Part shown: piece after piece, positions 47,684-64,000 of the stretch
Layout of the letters: every line of letters starts with the position of its first letter
How positions within the stretch are numbered: position 1 is the first letter of the stretch
Assembly (NCBI GenBank): GCA_038496445.1
Contig: JALMLS010000577.1
Location: forward strand, 186,001 to 250,000
Reading direction: 5' to 3'
DNA: 64,000 bases
Source: Trichosphaerium sp. ATCC 40318
Lineage: Eukaryota; Protista; Tubulinea
Made by a program: the position numbers and the translations under genes
The notes under the pieces: model-generated
Databases searched by the model: none
Seen by the model: the letters and a program-made list of their open reading frames with translations, nothing else
Told to the model about the DNA's origin: nothing

Positions 47684-48855
47684 CTATGCGTTGAAAAAGC
47701 GAATAGGCGTCCCTGGTGCGTATCTTGTGCGGCACATTGGACATTCACTGACGAGTGCACTGCATCTACAAGTCTGTTAACAATGTAAATTATTTATTTG
47801 TATCGTACTGAAGACACATGCAAATATGTCCACATGCTGGAATGACCACCTGACGTTCTTCCTCCCAACAAATAGCACATTTCCTAACAATATTATTAGT
47901 AATTGAACAATAAAGCGGACATTGTACTTGTTATGAGTATCCTCTGATTCTTGAGGGTCAAGTTGAGGATTGGTTTCGGTGTTTCGCTCTTGGTTCGAAG
48001 ATTGTATCAGTGATTCTTGCTCCTGTGGTGCTTGTACAACTGGTTTATCGTGTTCTTCTCTTGACACTCTGCAATTACGACAATGTGTCCTTACTGCGAA
48101 ATTGAGTTCATCACATCTGTTACATTTCCAATCGCCTGTTAAACATTTTATTACTATGAAAAAAAAGCACTGTGAGTTGTACCTTCTCTCGCGTGCACCC
48201 TATTCTCGTGAGCAATGCTGCCCAAATGGTGAGGTCTAAGTGAACGGCATTGACGACATTTTGTTTTGCTTGCAAAATTGTTGTAGTTGCATGATGGGCA
48301 TACCCAATCTGAAGCACGTGATTGAACGGTAACGGCTTGATGATTTCTGTTTGAGACTGAGTTTTGCCGTTCGTTAGCCTGAATACTGCCCTACAAATGC
48401 TAGGTTAACAAATCAATTTAGGTTTTACACGTACAGGTGGCGGCGCATTACATTTTCTGCATTTCTTCCTGGCTCTGAAATTGAGTTCATTGCATTGATT
48501 GCAATGCCAATCGCCAGGCACGGTCGCTAAGTCGGTAGCATATTCAGTTTTACCCTTTGGTAATCTACACTTGAAACAATGTGTTCGACTCTTGAAATTA
48601 TGAGTCTTACAAGTGCTTGCGCTACAAATCCAATCTCCAACTTCTATGTGTTGCGCTTCAGTCATGGCAACATCTCTTTTCGACGATGCCTAAACAACAT
48701 TAACATTACTAGCCAGTATAGCGCTTATTTGGTACGTGTGGTCTAGGCTTATGGCAGGATCTACATTCTGTCCTATCAGCAAAATTACTCCTGTTACAAC
48801 CCTTGGTGTTACAGCGCCACTCAGATGATTTTCCACGTCTTTTGTAGTATGCCAT
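47684..48855 (-). CDS. Four RanBP2-type zinc fingers + C-terminal C3HC4 RING
   Basis: WRC..C..NFADRTECRSC; GDWIC..C..NFKSRTHCFKC; GDWHCNQC..NFRARKKCRKC; GDWKCNRC..NFAVRTHCRNC; RING CWEEERQVVIPACGHICMC..CPMCR. Confidence 0.85.
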
Positions 48856-49827: not shown

Positions 49828-52800
49828 ATGTTGACACAGCGTATTTACTATCTGTTCGCAAAAATGATCTAAATACCGTTCCACGTACTACACTAACACT
49901 AGGTACTATACCACATGATTTATTAGACTTTGAGAATGTCAACCTGTCCAAAAAAACCGTTAAGGAAGGCGTTCCCAACTTTGTTAGTTTGTAAAGAGTA
50001 CGGCGTACAATGACAGACATAGACAGACTGATCAAAAAGGGCTCAAAGAAAAAGATATTGAGCGATGAAGACATAGAGTTCTATTCGCAGATGTACGAGC
50101 TCGTAAACTCTACTACAGCATCTATCTGGCAAATCGAAGGGCTTTTGTACGTAAAACGTAACAACATTTAGTGCGAATTCTGACTGGCTGTTAGACGCTC
50201 GCGTTTGATAGATTTAGTTGGGCCTTTGGATGACAGCGACAATAGTACTGATTACAGTGACGCTACGGACGGAACGCGTATTATTCACGACGACAGGTCT
50301 CTAGAGCCATGGGCACAGGTTCTAAGGGATAGGTAAGCTAGTATTGCTTTTCTTACCTTTCCGCCCACCAAGTACTCACCATTTTAATTAGATACGCGCA
50401 ATGTAAGCGTATACGCGCCGACATAGAGAAGGCCGAGGGATCGTTAGACGCATTTGCCACTGGTTACGAAATTTTCGGGTTTACACAGCAGCCTGAAGGC
50501 ATCCGTTTGGTGGAATGGGCGCCTAGCGCAAAAGCCCTTCACCTTATTGGAGACTTTAGTATCCTACACAACACACAACAATTTAACAACTTCAGAATTT
50601 ATTTTTTACAATTTTCTCCTTGACACTCTCATACCAATGGCACTACACCTCCCATCCACTCGAAAAGAAGGAGTATGGTCGTTGGGAGATATTGCTAAAG
50701 AATAAAGATGGTACCCCTGCGATTGCACATGGCTCAAAAGTTAAGGTAATACCGCGTTTTTATCGTTTGCAAACGTCATGCATGATTCTCCTTCCAAAAA
50801 TCTCTGCTGACACTTTTTAGCTAGCAGTAACGCTACCTAATGGTACTGTTGAGACGCGTATACCCGCATGGATAAAGTATGTAACGATGGAGAAGGATCA
50901 AATTGTAAGACCTATTTTTTTTTGTAAACAGCTAAAAGAGTTTGATAGATTTTTGACGGTATTTACTGGCAACCACCGAAACCTTACGAATGGAAAAACG
51001 AGCGCCCAGCAAAACCAAGCGCATTGCGTGTATACGAAGCTCACGGTAAGTAACGGTAGTTGTATTTGGTTTTCGCATAATGAAATAACGCGAAAATAGT
51101 TGGCATGGCTTCAAAAGACCCTAAAGTTGGGACTTACCTAGAATTCAAACGTGACGTCTTACCATTCATAAAGTACGTTGTTACTCCCTCCAGTTTCATT
51201 AATACTAACTTTACTCGTTAGAGATCTTGGATACAATTGCATCCAATTGATGGCAGTCATGGAACATGCGTATTATGGCAGTTTTGGATACCAGATCACT
51301 AATTTTTTCGCTGCATCGTCTAGAAGCGGTAATGTTACATTTTCTTAGTCACAATCCTTAATCTTTGCGTAGGTACTCCTGAAGAGCTTAAAGAACTCAT
51401 TGACGCTGCACATGGAATGGGCCTATACGTGCTCCTCGATGTAGTACACAGGTACAATCAAAGTTCCCTACAAAAAATGTTTCTGTTCTCACTTTTAAAA
51501 AGTCATGCATCAAAAAATGTTGCAGACGGATTAAACATGTTTGATGGTACAGATCATCACTACTTCCATGGTGGTGTCAAAGGAACACACGCCTTGTGGG
51601 ATAGTAGATTGTTCAATTATGGTAACTGGGAAGTGCTGAGGTTCCTTTTATCCAACCTCAACTGGTGGATAAATGAAGTACTACACCATTATTAGCACGT
51701 ATAACGTCTCATCTTTTTCCAATAGTACCACTTTGACGGATTCCGATTTGATGGTGTTACTAGTATGTTATATGTACACCACGGTATAGGACAAGCCATA
51801 ACGTCTTACGGCGACTATTTTGGGTTTGGTGTTGATACAGAAGCTTTGACTTACCTACAACTTGCCAACGACTATATTCATGAGGTTAGCCACCAGCACC
51901 TTGCTTATAAACTAACAGCTTTAGACCTTTCCATTCGCCATTACAATAGCGGAAGAGGTCAGTGGTATGCCTGGTATGTGTAGGCCTGTATCAGAAGGTG
52001 GTATTGGATTCGATTATCGCCTAGGTAAACCCAATTAAACTCTACGAAAAATTGAGAATATAACGTCAGCGTTAAAGGTATGGCCATACCAGACAAGTGG
52101 ATTGGTGTCCTCAAGCACCTAAAGGACGAAGAATGGAATATGGGTAACATCACATGGACATTAGTGAACAGGCGTTGGAATGAAAAGACAATTGCGTACT
52201 GCGAGTCTCACGATCAGGTGGAGCTTTCTACTTTCAGAAGCCAAAAAGCTTACATTATGTAATAGGCTCTTGTTGGAGACAAAACAATAGCGTTTTGGCT
52301 TATGGACAAAGAAATGTACACTGGCATGTCTACATTATCTGAAGGTAAGCAACAACTAAACCTTCATCTCTTCCATGCTTATGTACTTACTAGGAAATGC
52401 AATTGTTGACCGCGGTATCCAACTACACAAAATGATACGCTTGATTACATTCGGCCTTGGTGGCAACGCATATCTTACATTCATGGGAAATGAGTTTGGA
52501 CACCCAGAGTGGATTGACTTCCCACGCGAAGGAAACAATGAAAGCTATCATTACTGTCGTAGACGATGGGATCTAGCTCAAGATGATCTTCTCAAATACA
52601 AGTTTTTATGGCTATTCGACAAAGAAATGATTCACCTTGACGTCAACCACAATGTCCTCTCTAGTGGTGTACGACCTACTCTCATAGCTAAAAAGTATAT
52701 TGACTAATGCTCTCTAAGGAGTACCTTTCATTAAAACACGAAGGAGACAAAGTAGTTGCTTTCGAACGTGGTGGTCTGTTGTTTGTTTTCAATTTCCATC

Positions 52801-53145
52801 CTACAAAGAGCTTCCCTGACTACCCTATCGGTAAGCCTTGTTTTTTAACCGCTTTCTACTAGCACTGTTAAAGTAGCGAATATGTGTTTATTGAGACACT
52901 AGGTATTGATGTGCCAGGAAAGTACGCTATCGAGTTAGATACTGATAGCAAGGTATTTGGCGGATTTGCTCGATCTGATCCAAAAACACAATTTTCAACA
53001 CGTGGTGTTCCACTGCACGGCAGAAAAGACTCCTTACTCATGTATATTCCATCAAGGTACAAAAATAACACAGTATTGCGTCAATCAACAAAACTAACGA
53101 TTGTTTAGGTCTGCATTAGTTCTCAAAAAAGTAGGCAATGTGTAA
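49828..53145 (+). CDS. GBE1: 1,4-alpha-glucan (glycogen) branching enzyme, GH13_8, with N-terminal extension
   Basis: [74 protein letters not shown]. Confidence 0.97.
50559..50632 (+). other. U12-type intron with non-canonical GT-AT termini in GBE1
   Basis: 5' GTATCCT; branch TTCTCCTTGAC; only an AT acceptor at 50631-50632 restores GDFNQW in frame. Confidence 0.75.
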
Positions 53146-53249
53146 CTTTTTATAAAGACATTTATTATTCATCACTCTTTCTTGGGGTAAAAAAAAATTT
53201 TGGTGAACACTTCACAGCAATTGCACACTTCGCAAACGTTACACTTCAA

Positions 53250-53740
53250 TTTCCGGAAGGAGTTACTAGCTGATAGCTTTAACGGAAAATACAGCGTTTA
53301 CAACATAATTTCACCTGTGTTTACATTTCCAGATAATCCGTTTATCCGATTATCAATAAGAAGTAGAGTCTTTTATCACCCAGTTTAGCCAGGACATCGT
53401 GTACGATGCCTATTGCCATCACCTACACGTAAGTTTTCTTACGACATTGCAAACTTGCAATACCTCAAAGCAAAACTATCGCCTAGTCCACATTTGAGGA
53501 TAACACATATTCAACAAAGGCATCTTGGGAATCCCTCAGACCCAGCGCCAGCTTTTGTATGAACTTGTACTTGTTGGTTGTAGTGTGGTTGGGAGTTGTG
53601 CAACTCAGGAAGAATGACACATCGTCAACTAACGTTTTTTGGTAACACTAACGTGAGAGCTCGCCTTCATCAAATGATGTTAACTTGTGTTCTGTTCTTG
53701 CTCTTAGATTCCAGATTTCTGTTGGGCTACATTACAGTGG
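53250..53740 (-). mobile_element. Possible highly degenerate LINE 3' remnant
   Basis: Frame-broken fragments IWNLR..K, LPT, CPL, IIWKC in the order expected for a LINE ORF2 C-terminus; no intact ORF. Confidence 0.3.
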
Positions 53741-55089
53741 TAATACGCCAATAGAAACACAAAAAATATTATTGTAAGTTAGAGAAAATGGTAAAGACGA
53801 AGGCTTCTTATCTCAGAAAAGAACCGGGACTTTTCAAAATACGCGTAGAAATGATGTATAATTACAACATTTACTTAATCTTGGCGCATACACTTTAATT
53901 TGCATTCATCTAAAGAAAAACCGAAAAAGAGAAATTGAAAACAGAAAAACGAAATTTCGTCAAGCTCGAGGAGTTTTGGAGCGAGTTACATTCTATAATA
54001 AAGTCCTTTCATCTACATTGTTTTTAGTTCCATTTTCCACAAGTGGAAAAAACTTGTGTTAAAAAGATATAGCGTCATAAATCACTTTGTTTAACTGTTT
54101 AGAAAAGTGTCACGCTATTTTTTCCTTCAATAGAAAGAAACGTGCTGTTAAAGGATGTAAAGGGAAAATAGCGCGAAGATAAAATCTTTTGGTTTTCTCA
54201 AAACGTCCAGAATAGTGCATTATAAAACCCTAGTGTTTCTGTTGTTTAAAATAAAATGCAAAACGTCAAAAAAAAAGTGCGCCGAAGTTCGGGATAAAGA
54301 AAGTTTGAAAAGGGAAATAAACTTGCGCGGAAACGGCGTATTAATCGGTATTTCTCTAAATTTATACTCTTGGCGGTTACCAGAGCGAGTTTGCCTTTTT
54401 GACCATTCTAAACTTTCTACAACCACGAAATTTGGTGTTTTTGATATTGTCCCGCTGTATTTAGACTCTAAACTCTTGTATTGAAATTTAGAGTTGTGAA
54501 CTACGTATTAACACTAATAAACAAAAAAAAGTTGTGCACTTGTGTAAGGAAAGTTTTCGCTACATCCCAAGAATAAATACTAGAAGCGTCTCTAGTATAC
54601 TCCGCCGATAAAGAGTGAAATAAGCTGTAAACGTAAAAAAAAAATTCCCAACCTACTAAGAAACGTTAGTTGTGGGTTTTTTAACGCCTCGCATCGAATT
54701 GAGCGCTTACGCTCGACTTGGAAATAAATTTGTTTGTCGCTATCGATTCTCACTTTTGCCCTTCTCTACAAATTTTTGTATTGGTCGTGTATCACTCCAT
54801 TACCGGGCTAAGAACGTGTAACACAGTATTTAACGGGGTTTGCGAACATAAAGCCCGTGCATGTCTAGTGTCAAGTAGAACAATCTTGTTGAAGTTAAAT
54901 ACCAGGCGCTCAATAGCGTATTTTCGGGTGCAATGATGATGCCAGCAAACGCCGGGCGGAATTTCGGAGCTCGTTTCCATTCTAAATCTGAGGAATTTTG
55001 CCATGCAAATTCTGCTTATTTGTTAAAAAACACCTCTGTGTGCCCATTAATGCTATACACAGCTAATTAATTTATAATAAATTAACAAA

Positions 55090-58000
55090 ATGGCACAATG
55101 GGGAGAACCTAGTATTGATAAAAATGTCTGGATTAAAGTTCAGAACAAGGTTCGTTGCTAAACTCCTTTTACCTTAAACTTTTAACCGACGCCCTGCGCG
55201 GTACTTTTCGAAACGTTTTGCACTGTTTTTGCTGCTCGGAGCGATCTGCTGCAGAATCTTTTGCGAAACTGCTTAAGCAGACGCCCTGTTGCACTACAAC
55301 CACACTGGCGGTGCACGCCTTTAACTTCGCAGTCTTTTTAACAACCAACCGCCGAGAAACCGATCTTATAAATTTTGTCTTTGAGCGGCATTGGTTGTTG
55401 CCTATGCAGCGCTCGCACTGCTTTCGTATTTCTAGCAACCCCTTTTACCGTTTTTTTGGTTTTGGACACAACTTTGCTCATTTTTCTATTAGGCGTTTGC
55501 AAGATGGGTCAACCATACGCTCTCCAAACGCTCACTAACGGTTAGCGAAGGAAACTTCGCAGAGGATCTCAAGTCTGGTGCGTAATTATTCGAGTTTTTT
55601 TTTTTTTTTTTCGTTGTTACGACGTTTTATCGGTTTGGGCAACGACCCTAATTGTCGAATACTCTGTGTACATTCGCTCACATTGCTCTAGGTGTTATTC
55701 TAGTCGCCCTACTAGAAGAACTTACTGGCAAGAGCATCAAATCTAAAACCGAACCTAAACACAACATACAAATGCGAGAAAACATTCAAGCCGCCCTCGA
55801 CTTTCTTGCTTCCGAAAAAGTAAAAATGTATGGTGTTTCAAGCTCTCTTATACACGACGGTAATCGCACCATGGTTTTGGGATTACTTTCTACTATCACA
55901 AAGACATACCTCATTAGCAAAGGTTCGTTTACTGTTTGGCGGTTTTTCCTTTTCGTCTTTTTTCTCGCTTTCCATATTTGGACGCTAGTTTGTTCCACTG
56001 ACTAATGCGCTGTAGATTTGCAAAGTTGGTGTAACGCCACTGTTGCAGAGGCTGATTCTTCTCTATCAATTGAAAACTTTCGTAACAGTTGGTCTGATGG
56101 CCGATTGTTCGCTGCTCTTGTCAACAAAGCAAAGCCCGGCTCTGTTGATGCTAGCTCTTTTGTAGAGGTACGGAAATATATTTATTCTTTTCAATATTGG
56201 TTTGTCTTATGCTTACTCGTTGTCAGACTGAAGATAAAAACACAGCCTTGAAACAAACAAAAGCTGTTTTCGATAAAATTAAATCGTTAGGTATTCCTGC
56301 ATTTATGGATGCTGATGATGTCGTTACTGCCCCAGACGCCATCTGCATTCGCATGCAAATATCTGCTATCAGAAACTATGTACGCAACCGCTAGAATTTT
56401 TTTTTTCGTTTCTGTTACTCTAAACTCACGTTGTGCTAGGTTGAAAAAGATTCTTCTTCGTCCTCCAGCTCGTCCTCCAGCTCTTCCTCTGGATCTGGTA
56501 AAGGAAAAGCTAAAGGTGGCTTCGGCGTAAGTGTCGGTGGTAAAGCCGATCTTGACGTTAAAGTTGGTGGTGACGTAGATGTTGATGCGTCTGCTGGTGC
56601 CTCTCTCGGAATTGGCGGAAAAGCAAAAGGTGGCGCTGATGTCGATGTCGGTGGAGATATCGGTCTTGGCGGCAAAGGAAAAGCCAAAGGCGGTGTTGAT
56701 GCTGACATCAAAGTCGGTGGAGATATCGGTCTAGGCGGCAAAGGAAAAGGAAAAGCCAAAGGTGGCTTCGGCGTGAGCCTCGGAGGTAAAGGAAGTGGAT
56801 CATCATCCTCGTCCTCCAGCTCCAGCGGCTCTGGATCCGGTAAAGGAAAAGCCAAAGGCGGTTTCGGATTGAGCGTTGGTGGTGGCCTTGGTGGCAAAGG
56901 AAAAGCCAAAGGCGGTGCTGATGTAAAAGTTGGCGGTGATATTGACCTTGGTGGAAAAGCCAAAGGTGGCGCTGATGTCGGTGGTGATATTGACCTCGGC
57001 GGAAAAGCTAAAGGTGGTGTCGATGCTGATGTTAAAGTCGGTGGCGGTCTCGGATTTGGCGGAAAAGGAAAAGCCAAAGGCGGCGCCGATGCAGATATTA
57101 AAATCGGTGGCGGTCTTGGCGGCAAAGTGAGTTACTTTTATACCTTTTAAAATTGCTTGTCTAAATTGTATTTAGGGAAAAGGAAAAGCCAAGGGCGGTT
57201 TCGGCGTTAGCCTCGGAGGTAAGGGAAGTGGATCATCTTCTTCCTCTTCTAGCTCCAGCGGCTCTGGATCCGGTAAAGGAAAAGCCAAAGGCGGTTTCGG
57301 ATTGAGCGTTGGCGGCAAAGGAAAAGCCAAAGGCGGTGTCGATGCTGATATTAAAGTCGGTGGAGATATCGGTCTTGGCGGCAAAGGAAAAGCCAAAGGC
57401 GGTGCTGATGCTGATGTCAAAGTTGGTGGCGGTCTCGGTCTAGGCGGTAAAGGAAAAGCCAAAGGTGGCGCTGATGTTGACGCTGATATTAAAATTGGTG
57501 GCGGTCTAGGCGGCAAGGTACTGTTTTTGGTTTCAGAGTTTTTTTTGTTACCCGTTACTCACTTTTATTTAGGGAAAAGGAAAAGCCAAAGGCGGTATTA
57601 GCCTCGGTTTTGGAGGTAAGGGATCAGGTTCATCCTCGTCCTCCAGCTCCAGCTCTGGATCCGGTAAAGGAAAAGCTAAAGGCGGTTTCGGATTGAGCGT
57701 TGGTGGCAAAGGAAAAGCCAAAGGCGGTGTTGATGCTGATATCAAAGTCGGTGGAGATATCGGTCTTGGAGGCAAAGGAAAAGCCAAAGGTGGTGTTGAT
57801 GTAGACGCTGATGTCAAAGTCAAGAAACCAAAAGGTAAAGCCAAGGGTGGTATTAGCCTCGGTTTTGGTGGTAAAGGATCAGGATCATCCTCCTCTTCTT
57901 CATCTTCTGGCTCCGGCTCAGGAAAGGGCAAAGCTAAAGGCGGTTTCGGCCTAAGCGTTGGCGGTAAAGGAAAAGCCAAAGGCGGTGTTGATGCTGATAT

Positions 58001-61000
58001 CAAAGTCGGTGGCGATGTTGATGCTGATGTAAAACTTGGCGGCAAAGGAAAAGTCAAGGGCAAAAAGGCCAAAGGCGGTTTCGGATTTGGCGGCAAAGGC
58101 AAAGGAAAAGCCAAAGGCGGTGTCAGCGTTGATGTAGATGCTGATGTCAAAGTCAAGGGTAAAAAACCAAAGGGTAAAGCCAAGGGCGGTCTTAAAATGT
58201 CGATGAAAGGCAAAAAAGGAAAGAAGCCTAAAGGAAAGAAAGTAAAAGCCAGTGGTGGCCTTGACTTGAATGCTGGAGGCGATGCCAAAATCAAAGTACG
58301 TTCTCGCTATTATTCTTTCCTTGTCTAGTTTACAATTTCTCACCTATTACTAGGGCAAAGGAAAAGCTAAAGGCGGTGTTGACGTTGATGCCAAGATTGG
58401 CGGTGATGTTGATGCTGACATTAAGGTCGGTGGTGGCCTTGGTGGCAAGGTAATAGTTAATAAATTTATAATTATTAATCGATGTGCTCTAAAACTTCTG
58501 TTAGGGAAAAGGAAAAGCTAAAGGTGGTATCAGCCTCGGCTTCGGTGGAAAAGGATCAGGATCTTCCTCCTCCTCTTCTTCATCTTCTGGCTCCGGCTCA
58601 GGAAAGGGCAAAGCTAAAGGCGGTTTCGGTCTAAGCGTTGGCGGCAAAGGAAAAGCCAAAGGCGGTGTCGATGCTGATATTAAAGTCGGTGGCGATGTTG
58701 ATGCTGACCTCAAGGTCAAGGGCAAAAAGCCTAAAGGCAAAGGCGGTTTAGGCTTCGGCGGTAAAGGAAAAGCCAAGGGTGGTGTTGATGTCGATGTAGA
58801 TGCTGATGTCAAAGTCAAGGTACATATTTTTTACCTTTGAATGAGAACTTGTAATTTGACGGTTTATTTGTAGGGCAAAAAGCCAAAAGGCAAAGCTAAA
58901 GGCGGAATCAGCCTCGGTTTCGGTGGAAAAGGATCAGGATCATCATCCTCTTCTTCCTCATCTGGCTCTGGAAAGGGCAAAGCTAAAGGCGGTTTCGGAT
59001 TCGGTCTTGGCGGTAAAGGAAAAGCCAAGGGCGGTATTGACGTTGATGTTGATGCTAACGTTGGTGGAGATGTCGACGCTGATGTCAAAGTCGGTGGCGA
59101 TGTTGATGCTGACCTCAAGGTCAAAGGCAAAAAACCTAAAGCCAAGGGTGGTTTCGGATTCGGTGGCAAAGGCAAAGCTAAAGGCGGCGTAGACGTCGAT
59201 GTTGATGCTGATGTCAAGGTCAAGGTATGTATTTGTACTCCTCTTTTTTCAAGAACTTACCTAAACTCAGGGAAAGAAACCTAAAGGAAAAGCTAAAGGC
59301 GGTATCAGCCTTGGCTTCGGTGGAAAAGGGTCAGGATCATCATCCTCTTCCTCATCCTCTGGCTCAGGCTCAGGAAAGGGCAAAGCTAAGGGTGGCTTCG
59401 GATTCGGTCTTGGTGGCAAAGGAAAAGCCAAGGGCGGTCTTGATGTCGATGCTGACGTAAATGTCGGTGGTGATGTCGACGCTGATGTCAAAGTCGGTGG
59501 TGATGTTGACGCTGACCTCAAGGTCAAAGGTAAAAAGCCTAAAGGCAAGGGCGGCTTCGGATTTGGAGGCAAAGGAAAAGCCAAGGGTGGTGTTGATGTA
59601 GACGTAGATGCTGACGTCAAAGTCAAAAAGCCAAAAGGAAAGGCCAAAGGCGGTATCAGCCTCGGTTTCGGTGGTAAAGGATCAGGATCATCATCCTCCT
59701 CTTCATCTTCCGGCTCTGGAAAGGGTAAAGCCAAAGGCGGTTTCGGATTCGGTCTTGGCGGCAAAGGAAAAGCCAAGGGCGGTATTGATGTTGACGCTGA
59801 TGTCAAAGTCGGTGGCGATGTCGATGTTGATGCCGATGTCAAGGTCAAAGGCAAGAAACCAAAAGGAAAAGGTGGTTTCGGCTTTGGCGGTAAAGGCAAA
59901 GCTAAAGGTGGTGTTGATGTTGATGTAGACGCCGATGTAAAAGTCAAGGTACATATCTTTCACATTTGATGGCTCGTAATTTGACTGGTTGTTGTTTAGG
60001 GCAAAAAACCAAAAGGCAAAGCTAAAGGTGGAATCAGCCTTGGTTTCGGTGGAAAAGGATCAGGATCATCATCCTCTTCTTCCTCATCTGGCTCTGGAAA
60101 GGGCAAAGCTAAAGGCGGTTTCGGATTCGGTCTTGGTGGCAAAGGAAAAGCCAAGGGCGGTATTGATGTCGACGCTGACGTAAAGGTCGGTGGTGATGTC
60201 GATGTTGACGCTGACGTCAAAGTCAAGGTATGACAAACTTTTTTTGATATTACGGAGGAACCTTTTCTCACATAGTTTAGGGTAAAAAACCAAAAGGCAA
60301 AGGCGGTTTCGGCTTCGGCGGCAAAGGAAAAGCCAAGGGTGGCGTTGATGTTGACGTAGATGCTGACGTAAAAGTCAAAGGCAAAAAGCCAAAGGGCAAA
60401 GCCAAGGGCGGAATCAGCCTAGGCTTCGGTGGTAAAGGATCAGGTTCATCCTCTTCCTCTTCCTCATCCGGCTCTGGAAAGGGTAAAGCCAAGGGCGGTT
60501 TCGGATTCGGCCTCGGCGGTAAAGGAAAAGCCAAGGGCGGTATTGATGTCGATGCTGACGTAAAGGTCGGTGGTGATGTCGATGTTGACGCTGATGTCAA
60601 AGTCAAGGTATGACAAACTTTTTAGTAATATGAACTTTTTCTCATATTGTTTAGGGTAAAAAACCAAAAGGCAAAGGCGGTTTCGGTTTTGGCGGTAAAG
60701 GAAAAGCCAAGGGTGGTGTTGATGTTGATGTCGATGCTGACGTCAACCTCAAAGGCAAGAAGCCAAAAGGTAAAGCGAAAGGCGGAATCAGTCTTGGTTT
60801 CGGTGGAAAAGGATCAGGATCATCATCCTCCTCTTCATCTTCCGGCTCTGGAAAGGGTAAAGCCAAAGGCGGTTTCGGATTCGGTCTTGGCGGCAAAGGA
60901 AAAGCCAAGGGCGGTATTGATGTTGACGCTGATGTCAAAGTCGGTGGCGATGTCGATGTTGACGCTGATGTTAAAGTCAAGGTATGTTTAATAGCTATTG

Positions 61001-64000
61001 CTTTATATGTAACTTTTTCTCACGTTCTTTAGGGCAAGAAACCAAAAGGAAAAGGCGGTTTCGGCTTTGGCGGTAAAGGAAAAGCCAAGGGTGGTGTTGA
61101 TGTCGATATTGATGCTGATGTCGATGCTGATGTAAACCTCAAAGGCAAAAAGCCAAAAGGCAAAGCCAAAGGCGGAATTAGCCTTGGTTTTGGTGGTAAA
61201 GGATCAGGATCATCCTCCTCTTCTTCATCCTCAGGCTCAGGAAAAGGCAAAGCTAAGGGTGGCTTCGGATTCGGCCTTGGCGGCAAAGGAAAAGCCAAGG
61301 GCGGTATTGATGTTGATGCTGACGTCAAAGTCGGTGGCGATGTCGATGTTGATGCTGATGTCAAGGTCAAAGGCAAGAAACCAAAAGGCAAAGGTGGTTT
61401 CGGCTTTGGTGGCAAAGGAAAGGCCAAGGGCGGCGTTGATGTTGATGTAGACGCTGATGTCAAAGTCGGTGGCGACGTTGATTTGAAAGGCAAAAAGAAA
61501 AAGCACAGTGGTGGTTTCCATCTTGGATTCGGTAAAGGCAAGCATGGCAAAGGAAAAGCCAAAGGTGGTTTGGACGTAGATGCTGATGTAGATGTTGATG
61601 CTGATGTCAAAGTAAAGGTACTGTATTTTTATAAGCAATGTTGCCCTTGCTTACTTTTTTTAGGGCAAAAAGCCAAAAGGCAAAGCTAAAGGCGGAATCA
61701 GCCTCGGTTTCGGTGGAAAAGGATCAGGATCATCATCCTCTTCTTCCTCATCTGGCTCTGGAAAGGGCAAAGCTAAAGGCGGTTTCGGATTCGGTCTTGG
61801 TGGCAAAGGAAAAGCCAAGGGCGGTATTGATGTCGACGCTGACGTAAAGGTCGGTGGCGATGTCGATGTTGATGCTGATGTCAAGGTCAAAGGCAAGAAA
61901 CCAAAAGGCAAAGGTGGTTTCGGCTTCGGCGGCAAAGGAAAAGCCAAGGGTGGCGTGGATGTCGATGTAGACGCTGACCTTGATGCTGACGTGAAAGTCA
62001 AAGGCAAGAAGCCAAAAGGCAAAGGCGGTATTAGCCTCGGTTTTGGCGGAAAAGGAAAGGGATCTGGATCATCATCCTCTTCTTCCTCATCCGGCTCTGG
62101 AAAGGGCAAAGCTAAAGGCGGCTTCGGATTCGGTCTTGGTGGTAAAGGAAAAGCCAAGGGCGGTATTGATGTCGACGCTGACGTAAAGGTCGGTGGTGAT
62201 GTCGATGTTGACGCTGATGTCAAAGTCAAAGGTAAAAAGCCAAAAGGAAAAGCCAAAGGTGGTATTAGCCTCGGTTTTGGCGGTAAAGGAAAGGGATCTG
62301 GATCATCATCCTCCTCTTCCTCTTCCGGCTCTGGAAAGGGCAAAGCCAAAGGCGGCTTCGGATTCGGTCTTGGCGGCAAAGGAAAAGCCAAGGGCGGTAT
62401 TGATGTTGACGCTGATGTCAAAGTTGGTGGCGATGTCGATGGAGATGTCAAACTCAAGGTATGCTTTATTAAATAATAAATTAGAATTCTAAACTTTTAT
62501 AGGGCGGCAAAGCCAAGGGTGGTGTTGATGCTGATGTAGATGTTAACCTCAAAGGCAAAAAACCAAAAGGCAAAGCCAAGGGTGGTATTAGCCTCGGCTT
62601 CGGCGGAAAAGGAAAAGGATCAGGATCATCTTCCTCTTCTTCCTCATCTGGCTCTGGAAAGGGCAAGGCCAAAGGCGGTTTCGGATTCGGTCTTGGTGGC
62701 AAAGGAAAAGCCAAGGGCGGTATTGATGTCGACGCTGACGTAAAGGTCGGTGGTGATGTCGATGTTGACGCCGATGTCAAGGTCAAAGGCAAAAAGCCAA
62801 AAGCCAAGGGAGGTGTAGACGTAGACGTTGATGCTGACCTTAAGGCTGATCGTCAGGGAAAGCGTACCTTCTCATTTGGATTCGGCAAAAAGAAGAAGCC
62901 AAAATCCCCTAAAGGTGATGTTGATGTAGATGCTGACATAAAGGTACACTTGCGAATACCTATTCTGTTTCTTACTCTACAAAGGTTGGCGGAGACGTAG
63001 ATGCTGATGTAAATTTGAAGGGCCACAAGAAGAAAAAGAGTGGTGGTTTCCATCTTGGATTCGGCAAGGGCAAACATGGCAAAGGAAAAGCCAAGGGAGG
63101 CGTTGATATTGACGTTGATGCTGATGCTGATTTAAAGCTCAAGGGCAAAAAAGCCAAGGGCGGCGCTGATGTTGATATTGATGCTGATGTCGATGCTGAC
63201 GTAAACCTCAAAGGCAAGAAGCCAAAAGGTAAAGCCAAAGGTGGTATCAGCCTCGGTTTCGGTGGAAAAGGAAAGGGATCAGGATCATCATCCTCCTCTT
63301 CTTCATCCTCAGGCTCAGGAAAGGGCAAAGCTAAGGGTGGCTTCGGATTCGGTCTTGGTGGTAAAGGAAAAGCCAAGGGCGGTATTGACGCTGACGTTAA
63401 AGTTGGTGGCGATATTGACGGAGATGCTGACCTTAAGGTTAAGGTATTTATATCCTACAATTACTACAATTTTTTACTGACCGTGAACTAGGGCGGCAAA
63501 GTCAAAGGTGGCGTAGATGCTGATGTAGACGCTGATATTAATGTCAAGGGCAAAAAACCTAAAGGCAAGGGTGGTATCAGCCTCGGCTTTGGCGGAAAAG
63601 GAAAAGGATCAGGATCATCTTCCTCTTCTTCATCATCCTCTGGCTCTGGCTCAGGAAAGGGCAAAGCTAAGGGCGGCTTCGGATTCGGTCTTGGTGGCAA
63701 AGGAAAAGCCAAGGGCGGTATTGACGCTGACGTAAAGGTCGGTGGCGATGTCGATGTTGATGCCGATGTCAAGGTCAAAGGTAAAAAACCAAAAGGCAAA
63801 GGCAAAATCAAGGGCGGTGTAGACACTGATGCTGACGTCAAAGTAAAGGTACTGTTCTTCAACTCTTGAGATTTTGTCATTAAATATTTTTGATAGGGCG
63901 GCAAGAAGGGAAGCGGTGGTTTCCACTTCGGCTTAGGAAAAAGCAAAAAAGGCAAAAAAGCCAAGGGCGGCATTGATGTAGACGCTGATATCAAGGTCGG
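55090..64000 (+). CDS. Giant tandem-CH (actin-binding domain) protein with G/K/D/V/S-rich repeat rod; continues beyond window
   Basis: WIKVQNKAFARWVN..EDLKSGVILVALLEELTGK..ENIQAALDFL..IHDGN..LGL (CH1); SWCN..NFRNSWSDGRLFAALV..LGIPAFMDADDV..PD (CH2); in-frame phase-0 splice into the repeats at 56440. Confidence 0.9.
56440..64000 (+). repeat. Modular coding repeat array: GGKGKAKGG linkers, xDVDADVKVK strands, ISLGF/FGFGL strands, about 19 poly-Ser spacers
   Basis: Directly visible high-identity repeats interrupted by 15 short introns. Confidence 0.97.

Follow-up and report, generated by a model that had tools for sequence, protein, structure and literature searches.

A single expressed mRNA of Trichosphaerium sp. 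ATCC 40318 joins an actinin-type CH1-CH2 head to at least 2,271 residues of a net-basic block copolymer that is maintained by selection. The gene lies at the downstream end of the 64,000-nucleotide stretch of DNA analysed here (the window), which is intron-rich and eukaryotic, with 39% GC overall and 46-49% GC with a strong G skew from 56 kb onward. From the ATG at 55090, 21 exons joined at 20 GT-AG introns give 2,498 stop-free codons, and the frame is still open at base 64000 (Table 1). The CH head comprises aa 1-227, and the tail, starting at aa 228, is encoded by a repeat region (56440-64000) of 7,561 bp and 2,271 aa up to the end of the window; the C-terminus is located outside the window, and the residue and unit totals of the tail are lower bounds. 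At a rough probability of 0.45, we propose that the protein is a giant cytoplasmic cortical tether, whose CH head would hold F-actin, whose basic tail would bind multivalently to anionic surfaces and whose strands would self-associate.

Table 1. Features of the CH-head gene in the window. X1, X2 and X3 are runs from which RNA contigs were taken.
Feature	Coordinates	Strand	Evidence
5' UTR; transcript start at about 55022	55022..55089	+	contigs of X1 and X2, from one sample, carry a template-switch adapter fused at 55022
Exon 1: start codon, putative N-terminal actin-binding segment, start of CH1	55090..55149	+	frame and RNA contigs
Exon 2: CH1 helix A (ABS1 region)	55493..55577	+	weak Pfam CH match, E 0.06; spliced in RNA
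Exon 3: CH1 body; Ser115 at the position of the relatives' ABS2 Trp	55692..55922	+	Pfam CH, E 1e-8; best PDB match Entamoeba 5NL7, E 7e-10
Exon 4: shortened linker and N-terminal half of CH2	56016..56167	+	Pfam CH, E 5e-11; alpha-actinin CH2 matches
Exon 5: second half of CH2, divergent	56227..56379	+	weak positional match to 5NL7 residues 190-213; spliced in RNA
Intron 5, phase 0, head/tail joint	56380..56439	+	removed in X1, X2 and X3
Exons 6-9: proximal repeats, more divergent, aa 228-843, with more Gly-Leu strands and one strongly basic segment near aa 760-795	56440..58449	+	introns 6-8 spliced in RNA
Exons 10-17: homogeneous core, units of 78-158 aa, aa 844-2045	58505..62458	+	repeat analysis; intron 11 spliced in X3
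Exons 18-21: distal repeats and extra basic-aromatic variants (e.g. aa 2158-2180)	62503..64000	+	splicing inferred from open frame only

RNA contigs of four runs were aligned to 55000-59900, where introns 1-8 and 11 are seen spliced out (intron 6 also in a third study, run X7); introns 12-20 rest on the open frame. An earlier sequence-only reading of this DNA had described a tandem CH domain spliced in frame to about 7.5 kb of repeats and had made its claim conditional on transcripts joining the exon at 56440. The open 21-exon frame, the Pfam CH matches and the RNA bear this out: the head-to-tail joint 56379>56440 is present in contigs of three runs (X1, X2 and X3) from two studies, and a single contig (X1 and X2, one sample) spans exons 1-6 behind the adapter at 55022. 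It is barely credible, then, that a CH-only gene merely lies beside an unrelated or mis-assembled repeat. An in-frame stop in intron 5, four codons after CH2, makes a CH-only isoform possible and the distal introns rely on the open frame, but the head-tail splice refutes this explanation for the junction, and the silent divergence of the repeats, far above their coding divergence (see below), argues against it as well. If intron 5 were retained, the product would be a CH-only protein of 231 aa, reminiscent of the shorter forms in which periaxin and AHNAK also occur. Such retention was not seen among the RNA contigs, which drop rare forms, and a CH-only main transcript was rejected. Some X3 contigs retain intron 1 (55150-55492) or intron 4 (56168-56226) while the next intron is spliced, and are probably processing intermediates. 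Other contigs, at 57050-59812, have loose ends with related but different repeats, one of which runs into the non-repeat sequence SGGQEFEFVR; these ends represent either the 3' part of the gene beyond the window or paralogues. No Rfam match was obtained in 53400-56500, including the 343-nt intron 1.

The 16 tail exons are 96-795 nt long. Intron 5 and every later intron, 16 in all, are in phase 0 and measure 41-60 nt. Fifteen tail introns come after a Lys codon that closes a strand or Gly block; the introns therefore multiplied together with the repeat. Among six core units, mean silent divergence is 0.42 and coding divergence 0.012 (a coding-to-silent ratio near 0.03), the longest exact repeat in the array is 155 nt, and the introns differ in sequence. 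Silent divergence so far above coding divergence indicates selection on the exact repeat sequence and excludes a collapsed or duplicated assembly. The tail repeats are thus real and under strong purifying selection, and an assembly artefact, which the sequence-only reading had named as grounds for refutation, was rejected. Two further candidates were rejected, namely a DNA satellite misread as protein and Pro-rich open reading frames on the opposite strand, which are shadows of the repeat.

Pfam CH matches were obtained in exons 2, 3 and 4 of the head. Exon 3 matches the CH1 domains of Entamoeba 5NL7 (the best solved structure), filamin A/B, alpha-actinins, spectrin and plectin; exon 4 matches the CH2 domain of alpha-actinins, and exon 5 is weakly aligned to the CH2 end. 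Actinin-type tandem-CH proteins carry a CH1 domain at the N-terminus with a CH2 domain behind it in the same chain, as does this protein: the actinin/filamin-type pair that had been recognised from the sequence alone was recovered for both domains in structure and Pfam matches. Judged by these matches, the head belongs to the tandem-CH superfamily and the protein fits no named subfamily (alpha-actinin, spectrin, plakin, filamin or cortexillin).

Two features set the head apart. The conserved CH1 Trp that serves as latch and actin contact (filamin A W142, in ABS2) is absent, Ser115 occupying that column, and the CH2 latch partner also looks lost, its column presumably being that of Ile215. In alpha-actinin, 18 residues separate the end of the CH1 match from the first Trp of CH2; here there are 8, a linker shorter by 10. 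In filamin A, the closed pair of CH domains buries this Trp at its interface, and in the open state the Trp contacts actin (PMC8810934); affinity tends to increase when the Trp-cation latch is broken (PMC6938246). With the Trp lost and the linker short, binding of the head to F-actin is therefore likely but not assured, and its affinity could go either way. A degenerate CH pair would provide no real F-actin anchor, binding weakly or to another partner, and would leave the tail as the working part. Precedent exists in cortexillins II and III, which have low affinity for actin (PMC4072576), and the Trp-to-Ser change, the short linker and a second half of CH2 that is barely recognisable all point the same way. 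We nevertheless consider such degeneration unlikely, because CH1, the best-conserved part of the head, has, as judged by inspection, kept both ABS1 and the N-terminal Trp segment, and because breakage of the latch usually raises affinity.

Eight amino acids fill 95% of the positions in the tail (residues 228-2498), among them G (30%), K (21%), S (11%), D (10%), V (9%) and A (7%). Lys is used almost to the exclusion of Arg (470:2) and Asp of Glu (232:1), and the net charge is +239, or +0.105 per residue. There is no Tyr or Trp, Phe accounts for 3.5%, Pro is almost missing and FG dipeptides number 75. Nineteen Ser blocks, 8-9 residues long (13 in the first), delimit 18 complete units of 78-206 residues; in mid-array, where the repeat unit quoted in the sequence-only reading proved accurate, the units measure 109-117 aa, and units 9 and 10, of 109 residues, are identical at the protein level. 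In the core, each unit consists of a Ser block, a basic linker, a Phe-Gly strand, a second basic linker, Asp/Val strands and a Lys/Pro block. The units carry 11-14 Ser and a net charge of +8 to +17 (+17 and +32 in two long ones).

When cut at Gly-Gly, the tail falls into short segments (median 5 residues) of four kinds, Lys-Gly/Ala, Phe/Leu-Gly, Asp/Val and Ser. The strict hydrophobic/polar alternation reported earlier was confirmed, runs of at least 6 residues covering 44.5% of the tail but 5.0 +/- 1.1% of shuffled versions. Charges are also segregated about twice as strongly as in shuffled sequence. The period-2 hydropathy register lasts about 20 residues and is carried across Gly-Gly breaks, with even spacing in 89 of 134.

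As had been stated, the tail is not made of spectrin, Ig or coiled-coil repeats: seven tail exons gave no Pfam match, including to spectrin and filamin Ig-like repeats, and the composition excludes helical repeats. The rod, beta-solenoid, cross-beta fibre or coacervate that it proposed is still conjectural. Two AlphaFold runs on the tail repeats, one alone and one with a self-alignment, gave pLDDT values of 43 and 46 and no secondary structure, although an alignment as shallow as 14 rows makes this weak evidence against a fold. In a charge-hydropathy analysis the tail (0.438, boundary 0.451) falls on the disordered side by just 0.013. Given these results and the lack of Pfam matches, the label 'rod' is unproven.

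If the tail nonetheless folded as a beta-solenoid, beta-roll or cross-beta filament, the protein would be a stiff actin-anchored strut or filament, which is the main alternative to the tether and was the leading idea of the sequence-only reading; in it, Gly-Gly turns would join strands of 5-11 residues, Val, Ile and Phe would point inward and Lys faces would neutralise Asp faces. The very strong purifying selection, the recurring segment types between Gly-Gly breaks and the even spacing over these breaks are what such a fold would lead one to expect. Related animal-like repeats, described below, pass the cut-off of Pfam DUF4097 and weakly match a beta-helical trimerisation family, and for the repeats of AHNAK2 a series of linked antiparallel strands has been predicted, though not proven (PMC8833689). 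A folded tail is still doubtful in our view, in light of the AlphaFold runs, five tail exons with no match to a Pfam beta-solenoid, the variation in unit length, the high Gly content and the large excess of Lys. An RTX roll was rejected, as the nonapeptide GGxGxDxUx has 0 matches in the tail.

The tail could instead act as the scaffold of a condensate or coacervate with RNA, polyphosphate or acidic proteins, its FG motifs serving as stickers and the head tethering droplets to actin. Blocky charge, a positive net charge per residue, the many FG dipeptides and the absence of a fold in AlphaFold would all suit this role. We regard it as distinctly improbable, since a preference for Lys over Arg and a scarcity of aromatic residues, both pronounced in the tail, make for poor sticker chemistry, and since such scaffolds rarely need exact sequence conservation.

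The cortical tether, our preferred reading, would operate in four steps. The head would dock on F-actin, probably in an unlatched state, as its Trp-cation latch lacks the Trp. The tail, with no stable fold when alone and a contour of up to about 0.8 micrometre, would use its Lys-Gly and Phe-Gly blocks to bind anionic surfaces weakly and multivalently, these being more F-actin and the acidic phospholipids of plasma or vesicle membranes. Asp/Val strands would then pair with Lys-faced segments, within one chain or between neighbours, forming transient beta-sheets and so an extensible mesh of cross-linked chains in the cortex; such sequence-specific strand pairing would explain the strict selection. 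An earlier suggestion that acidic strands pair with basic linkers is retained here in part, as the acidic strands can neutralise only half of the tail lysines. Finally, comparison of Ser count with net charge suggests that phosphorylation could release the tail, since modifying about half of the Ser residues of each unit would cancel its charge. On this reading the protein would work much as AHNAK does, as a scaffold between membrane and cortex, with a CH pair attaching it to actin; its likeness to cortexillin I would lie in a further, basic activity downstream of the CH domains.

The gene model and RNA joints, the CH matches, the abundance of Gly, the position on the disordered side of the charge-hydropathy boundary, the net charge of the tail, the lack of an AlphaFold fold, the period-2 register, the charge and Ser count of the units and the motif order shared with AHNAK-like repeats are consistent with a tether, as are the precedents of ADAP and cortexillin I described below. 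A scan of the tail on the basic-hydrophobic scale also gave 39 moderate peaks, at 0.4-0.54. Other observations count against it. The coding-to-silent ratio is stricter than a loose electrostatic tail needs, and the boundary with ordered proteins is very close. No basic-hydrophobic peak (best 0.54) attains 0.6, which we take to be the usual cut-off. Furthermore, the Trp that is lost here contacts actin in filamin A (PMC8810934), and the head may bind weakly. The C-terminus beyond the window may carry the real anchor.

Database searches were carried out exon by exon, the joined model being used in local scripts only, and full-length relatives could escape such searches. An exhaustive search with exon 17 of 1.84 billion proteins gave two matches at E 6e-6, and the sole matches of exons 17 and 6 were P0001 and P0002. 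Exon 3 had no match among 5.8 billion proteins, with candidates limited to 42-133 aa, and the tail had no usable match in the ESM Atlas. P0002 (L002:10001-11474) is a BTB-domain protein with a short tail containing Phe-Gly, poly-Lys and Ser-block motifs similar to those of the present repeat; the match was taken to be weak and compositional. Several ORFs of similar size are found upstream of it on L002.

P0001 is a repeat protein on the intron-bearing metagenome contig L001; in the ESM Atlas it reaches a score of 0.93 with a cluster of AHNAK-like type. Its contig holds an AHNAK-like repeat gene at L001:3-1735 and, downstream at L001:4305-4490, a Ser run between basic blocks that resembles the Ser blocks of the tail. 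A 13-codon motif common to the tail and P0001 led to six further contigs, L003-L008. These apparently represent a single gene from a single eukaryotic host, and its repeat exons measure 2.7-3 kb. The contigs of AHNAK-like repeats are probably of invertebrate origin, and L003-L008 may show AHNAK-type genes outside vertebrates. Their units follow the order seen in the tail (a GGFGF segment, a GGKGKxKGG linker, IDVD-type acidic strands and a KGKK block) and add a Met-Pro...Pro-Lys-Phe insert and many prolines. The P0001, L003 and L007 repeats pass the cut-off of Pfam DUF4097 Toastrack (PF13349), with about 100 bits for the gene of L003-L008; the tail exons have no match to this family. No CH exon was found near the repeats in L001-L008, and scans for the repeat motif in viral contigs and prokaryotic genomes gave no match.

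The shared order exceeds what composition yields in controls. One tail unit scores 158-205 against AHNAK-like repeats, compared with 97-119 (maximum 156) for dipeptide-preserving shuffles. A profile of animal-like units scores 67 bits on the tail, compared with -157 when reversed, -61 when shuffled and 1.4 (maximum 30) with segments reordered, and hhalign of the tail to these units gives 95.7% versus 27% reversed, over 21 columns only. The loci behind these scores were chosen for this resemblance out of huge collections and represent about two independent data points, and short low-complexity grammars can converge; the shared motif order may accordingly reflect either homology of the tail repeat to AHNAK or convergence. 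The sequence-only reading had found that the tail only loosely recalls AHNAK. The likeness holds, but 'loosely' understated it, as the AHNAK-like database matches share the motif order.

AHNAK, AHNAK2 and periaxin are likewise giant and have a central array of units of roughly 110-165 residues with alternating strands and charge blocks, and the bias of K over R and D over E is common to this group and the tail. The structure and role of the central AHNAK repeats are still predicted only, as a polyionic rod or propeller. In place of their N-terminal PDZ domain, the mapped 5' end of the present gene leads directly into CH1, and 16 phase-0 introns interrupt it, whereas AHNAK repeats are encoded by one giant exon (PMC10682155). 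The tail is net basic, unlike the animal-like repeats, which are net acidic (-8 to -81), and differs from AHNAK-like repeats in being almost free of Pro, in lacking the Met-Pro...Pro-Lys-Phe insert and in having a Ser block per unit. The CH-head giant is therefore not an AHNAK, having neither a PDZ domain nor a giant exon. AHNAK and periaxin also have a C-terminal non-repeat domain that binds annexin A2/S100A10 and actin; any counterpart in the present protein would lie beyond the window. Nothing relevant was found in the literature on AHNAK in amoebae, Amoebozoa or invertebrates, or on AHNAK with CH domains.

An N-terminal CH1-CH2 pair with a long spacer behind it is shared with alpha-actinin, filamin, spectrin, plectin, utrophin, the cortexillins and Entamoeba alpha-actinin-2; Dictyostelium has 14 dual-CH proteins. 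The known tandem-CH cross-linkers have spectrin, Ig or coiled-coil spacers, and here a low-complexity, basic and selected block copolymer takes their place. Cortexillin I of Dictyostelium is an amoebozoan CH-pair protein with a second downstream activity, as proposed here, in the form of a stronger actin-bundling site, sensitive to PIP2, behind the CH head (PMC4072576). It is, however, a coiled-coil dimer of 444 aa, whereas here a Ser block and Gly/Lys repeats follow straight after CH2, with no coiled coil. Basic disordered segments such as the MARCKS effector domain and the GPA/GPQ tails of myosin-I bind F-actin or acidic lipids. Similarly, a basic disordered region of ADAP, at its N-terminus, bundles F-actin (10.1101/2021.12.14.472590). 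These binders have repeated Lys-rich or Lys-Phe motifs, electrostatic binding and an off-switch by Ser phosphorylation; the tail is far longer, strictly periodic and equipped with acidic, beta-prone strands.

In line with the sequence-only reading, a CH pair on such a repeat tail appears undescribed, no full-length counterpart having emerged from exon-wise searches in which protist proteomes are thinly covered. The CH-plus-repeat family is known from one genome, and its function is proposed from sequence. As a tentative conjecture, which we think rather unlikely as a whole, the AHNAK-type repeat might be an ancient, pre-animal polymer module set on differing anchors (a CH pair here, PDZ in vertebrates). 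Its beta-strands, complementary in charge, would then drive self-assembly into a cortical mesh or filament switched by phosphorylation, a kind of actin-linked cytoskeletal material unlike the rods built of spectrin repeats, Ig domains or coiled coils. If the repeats are homologous, AHNAK-type scaffolds predate animals. A stripped-down, nearly proline-free, eight-letter repeat with identical 109-residue units also makes an easy test object for fold, gel or disorder, and a natural template for charge-patterned protein materials.

Two neighbouring features of the window may be mentioned. On the forward strand, an upstream gene at 50400-53300 resembles a glycogen branching enzyme by inspection of the open reading frame 52375-52707, a piece that on its own gave no Pfam match. 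On the reverse strand, an open reading frame at 48405-48665 contains two RanBP2-type zinc fingers (Pfam E 2e-12).
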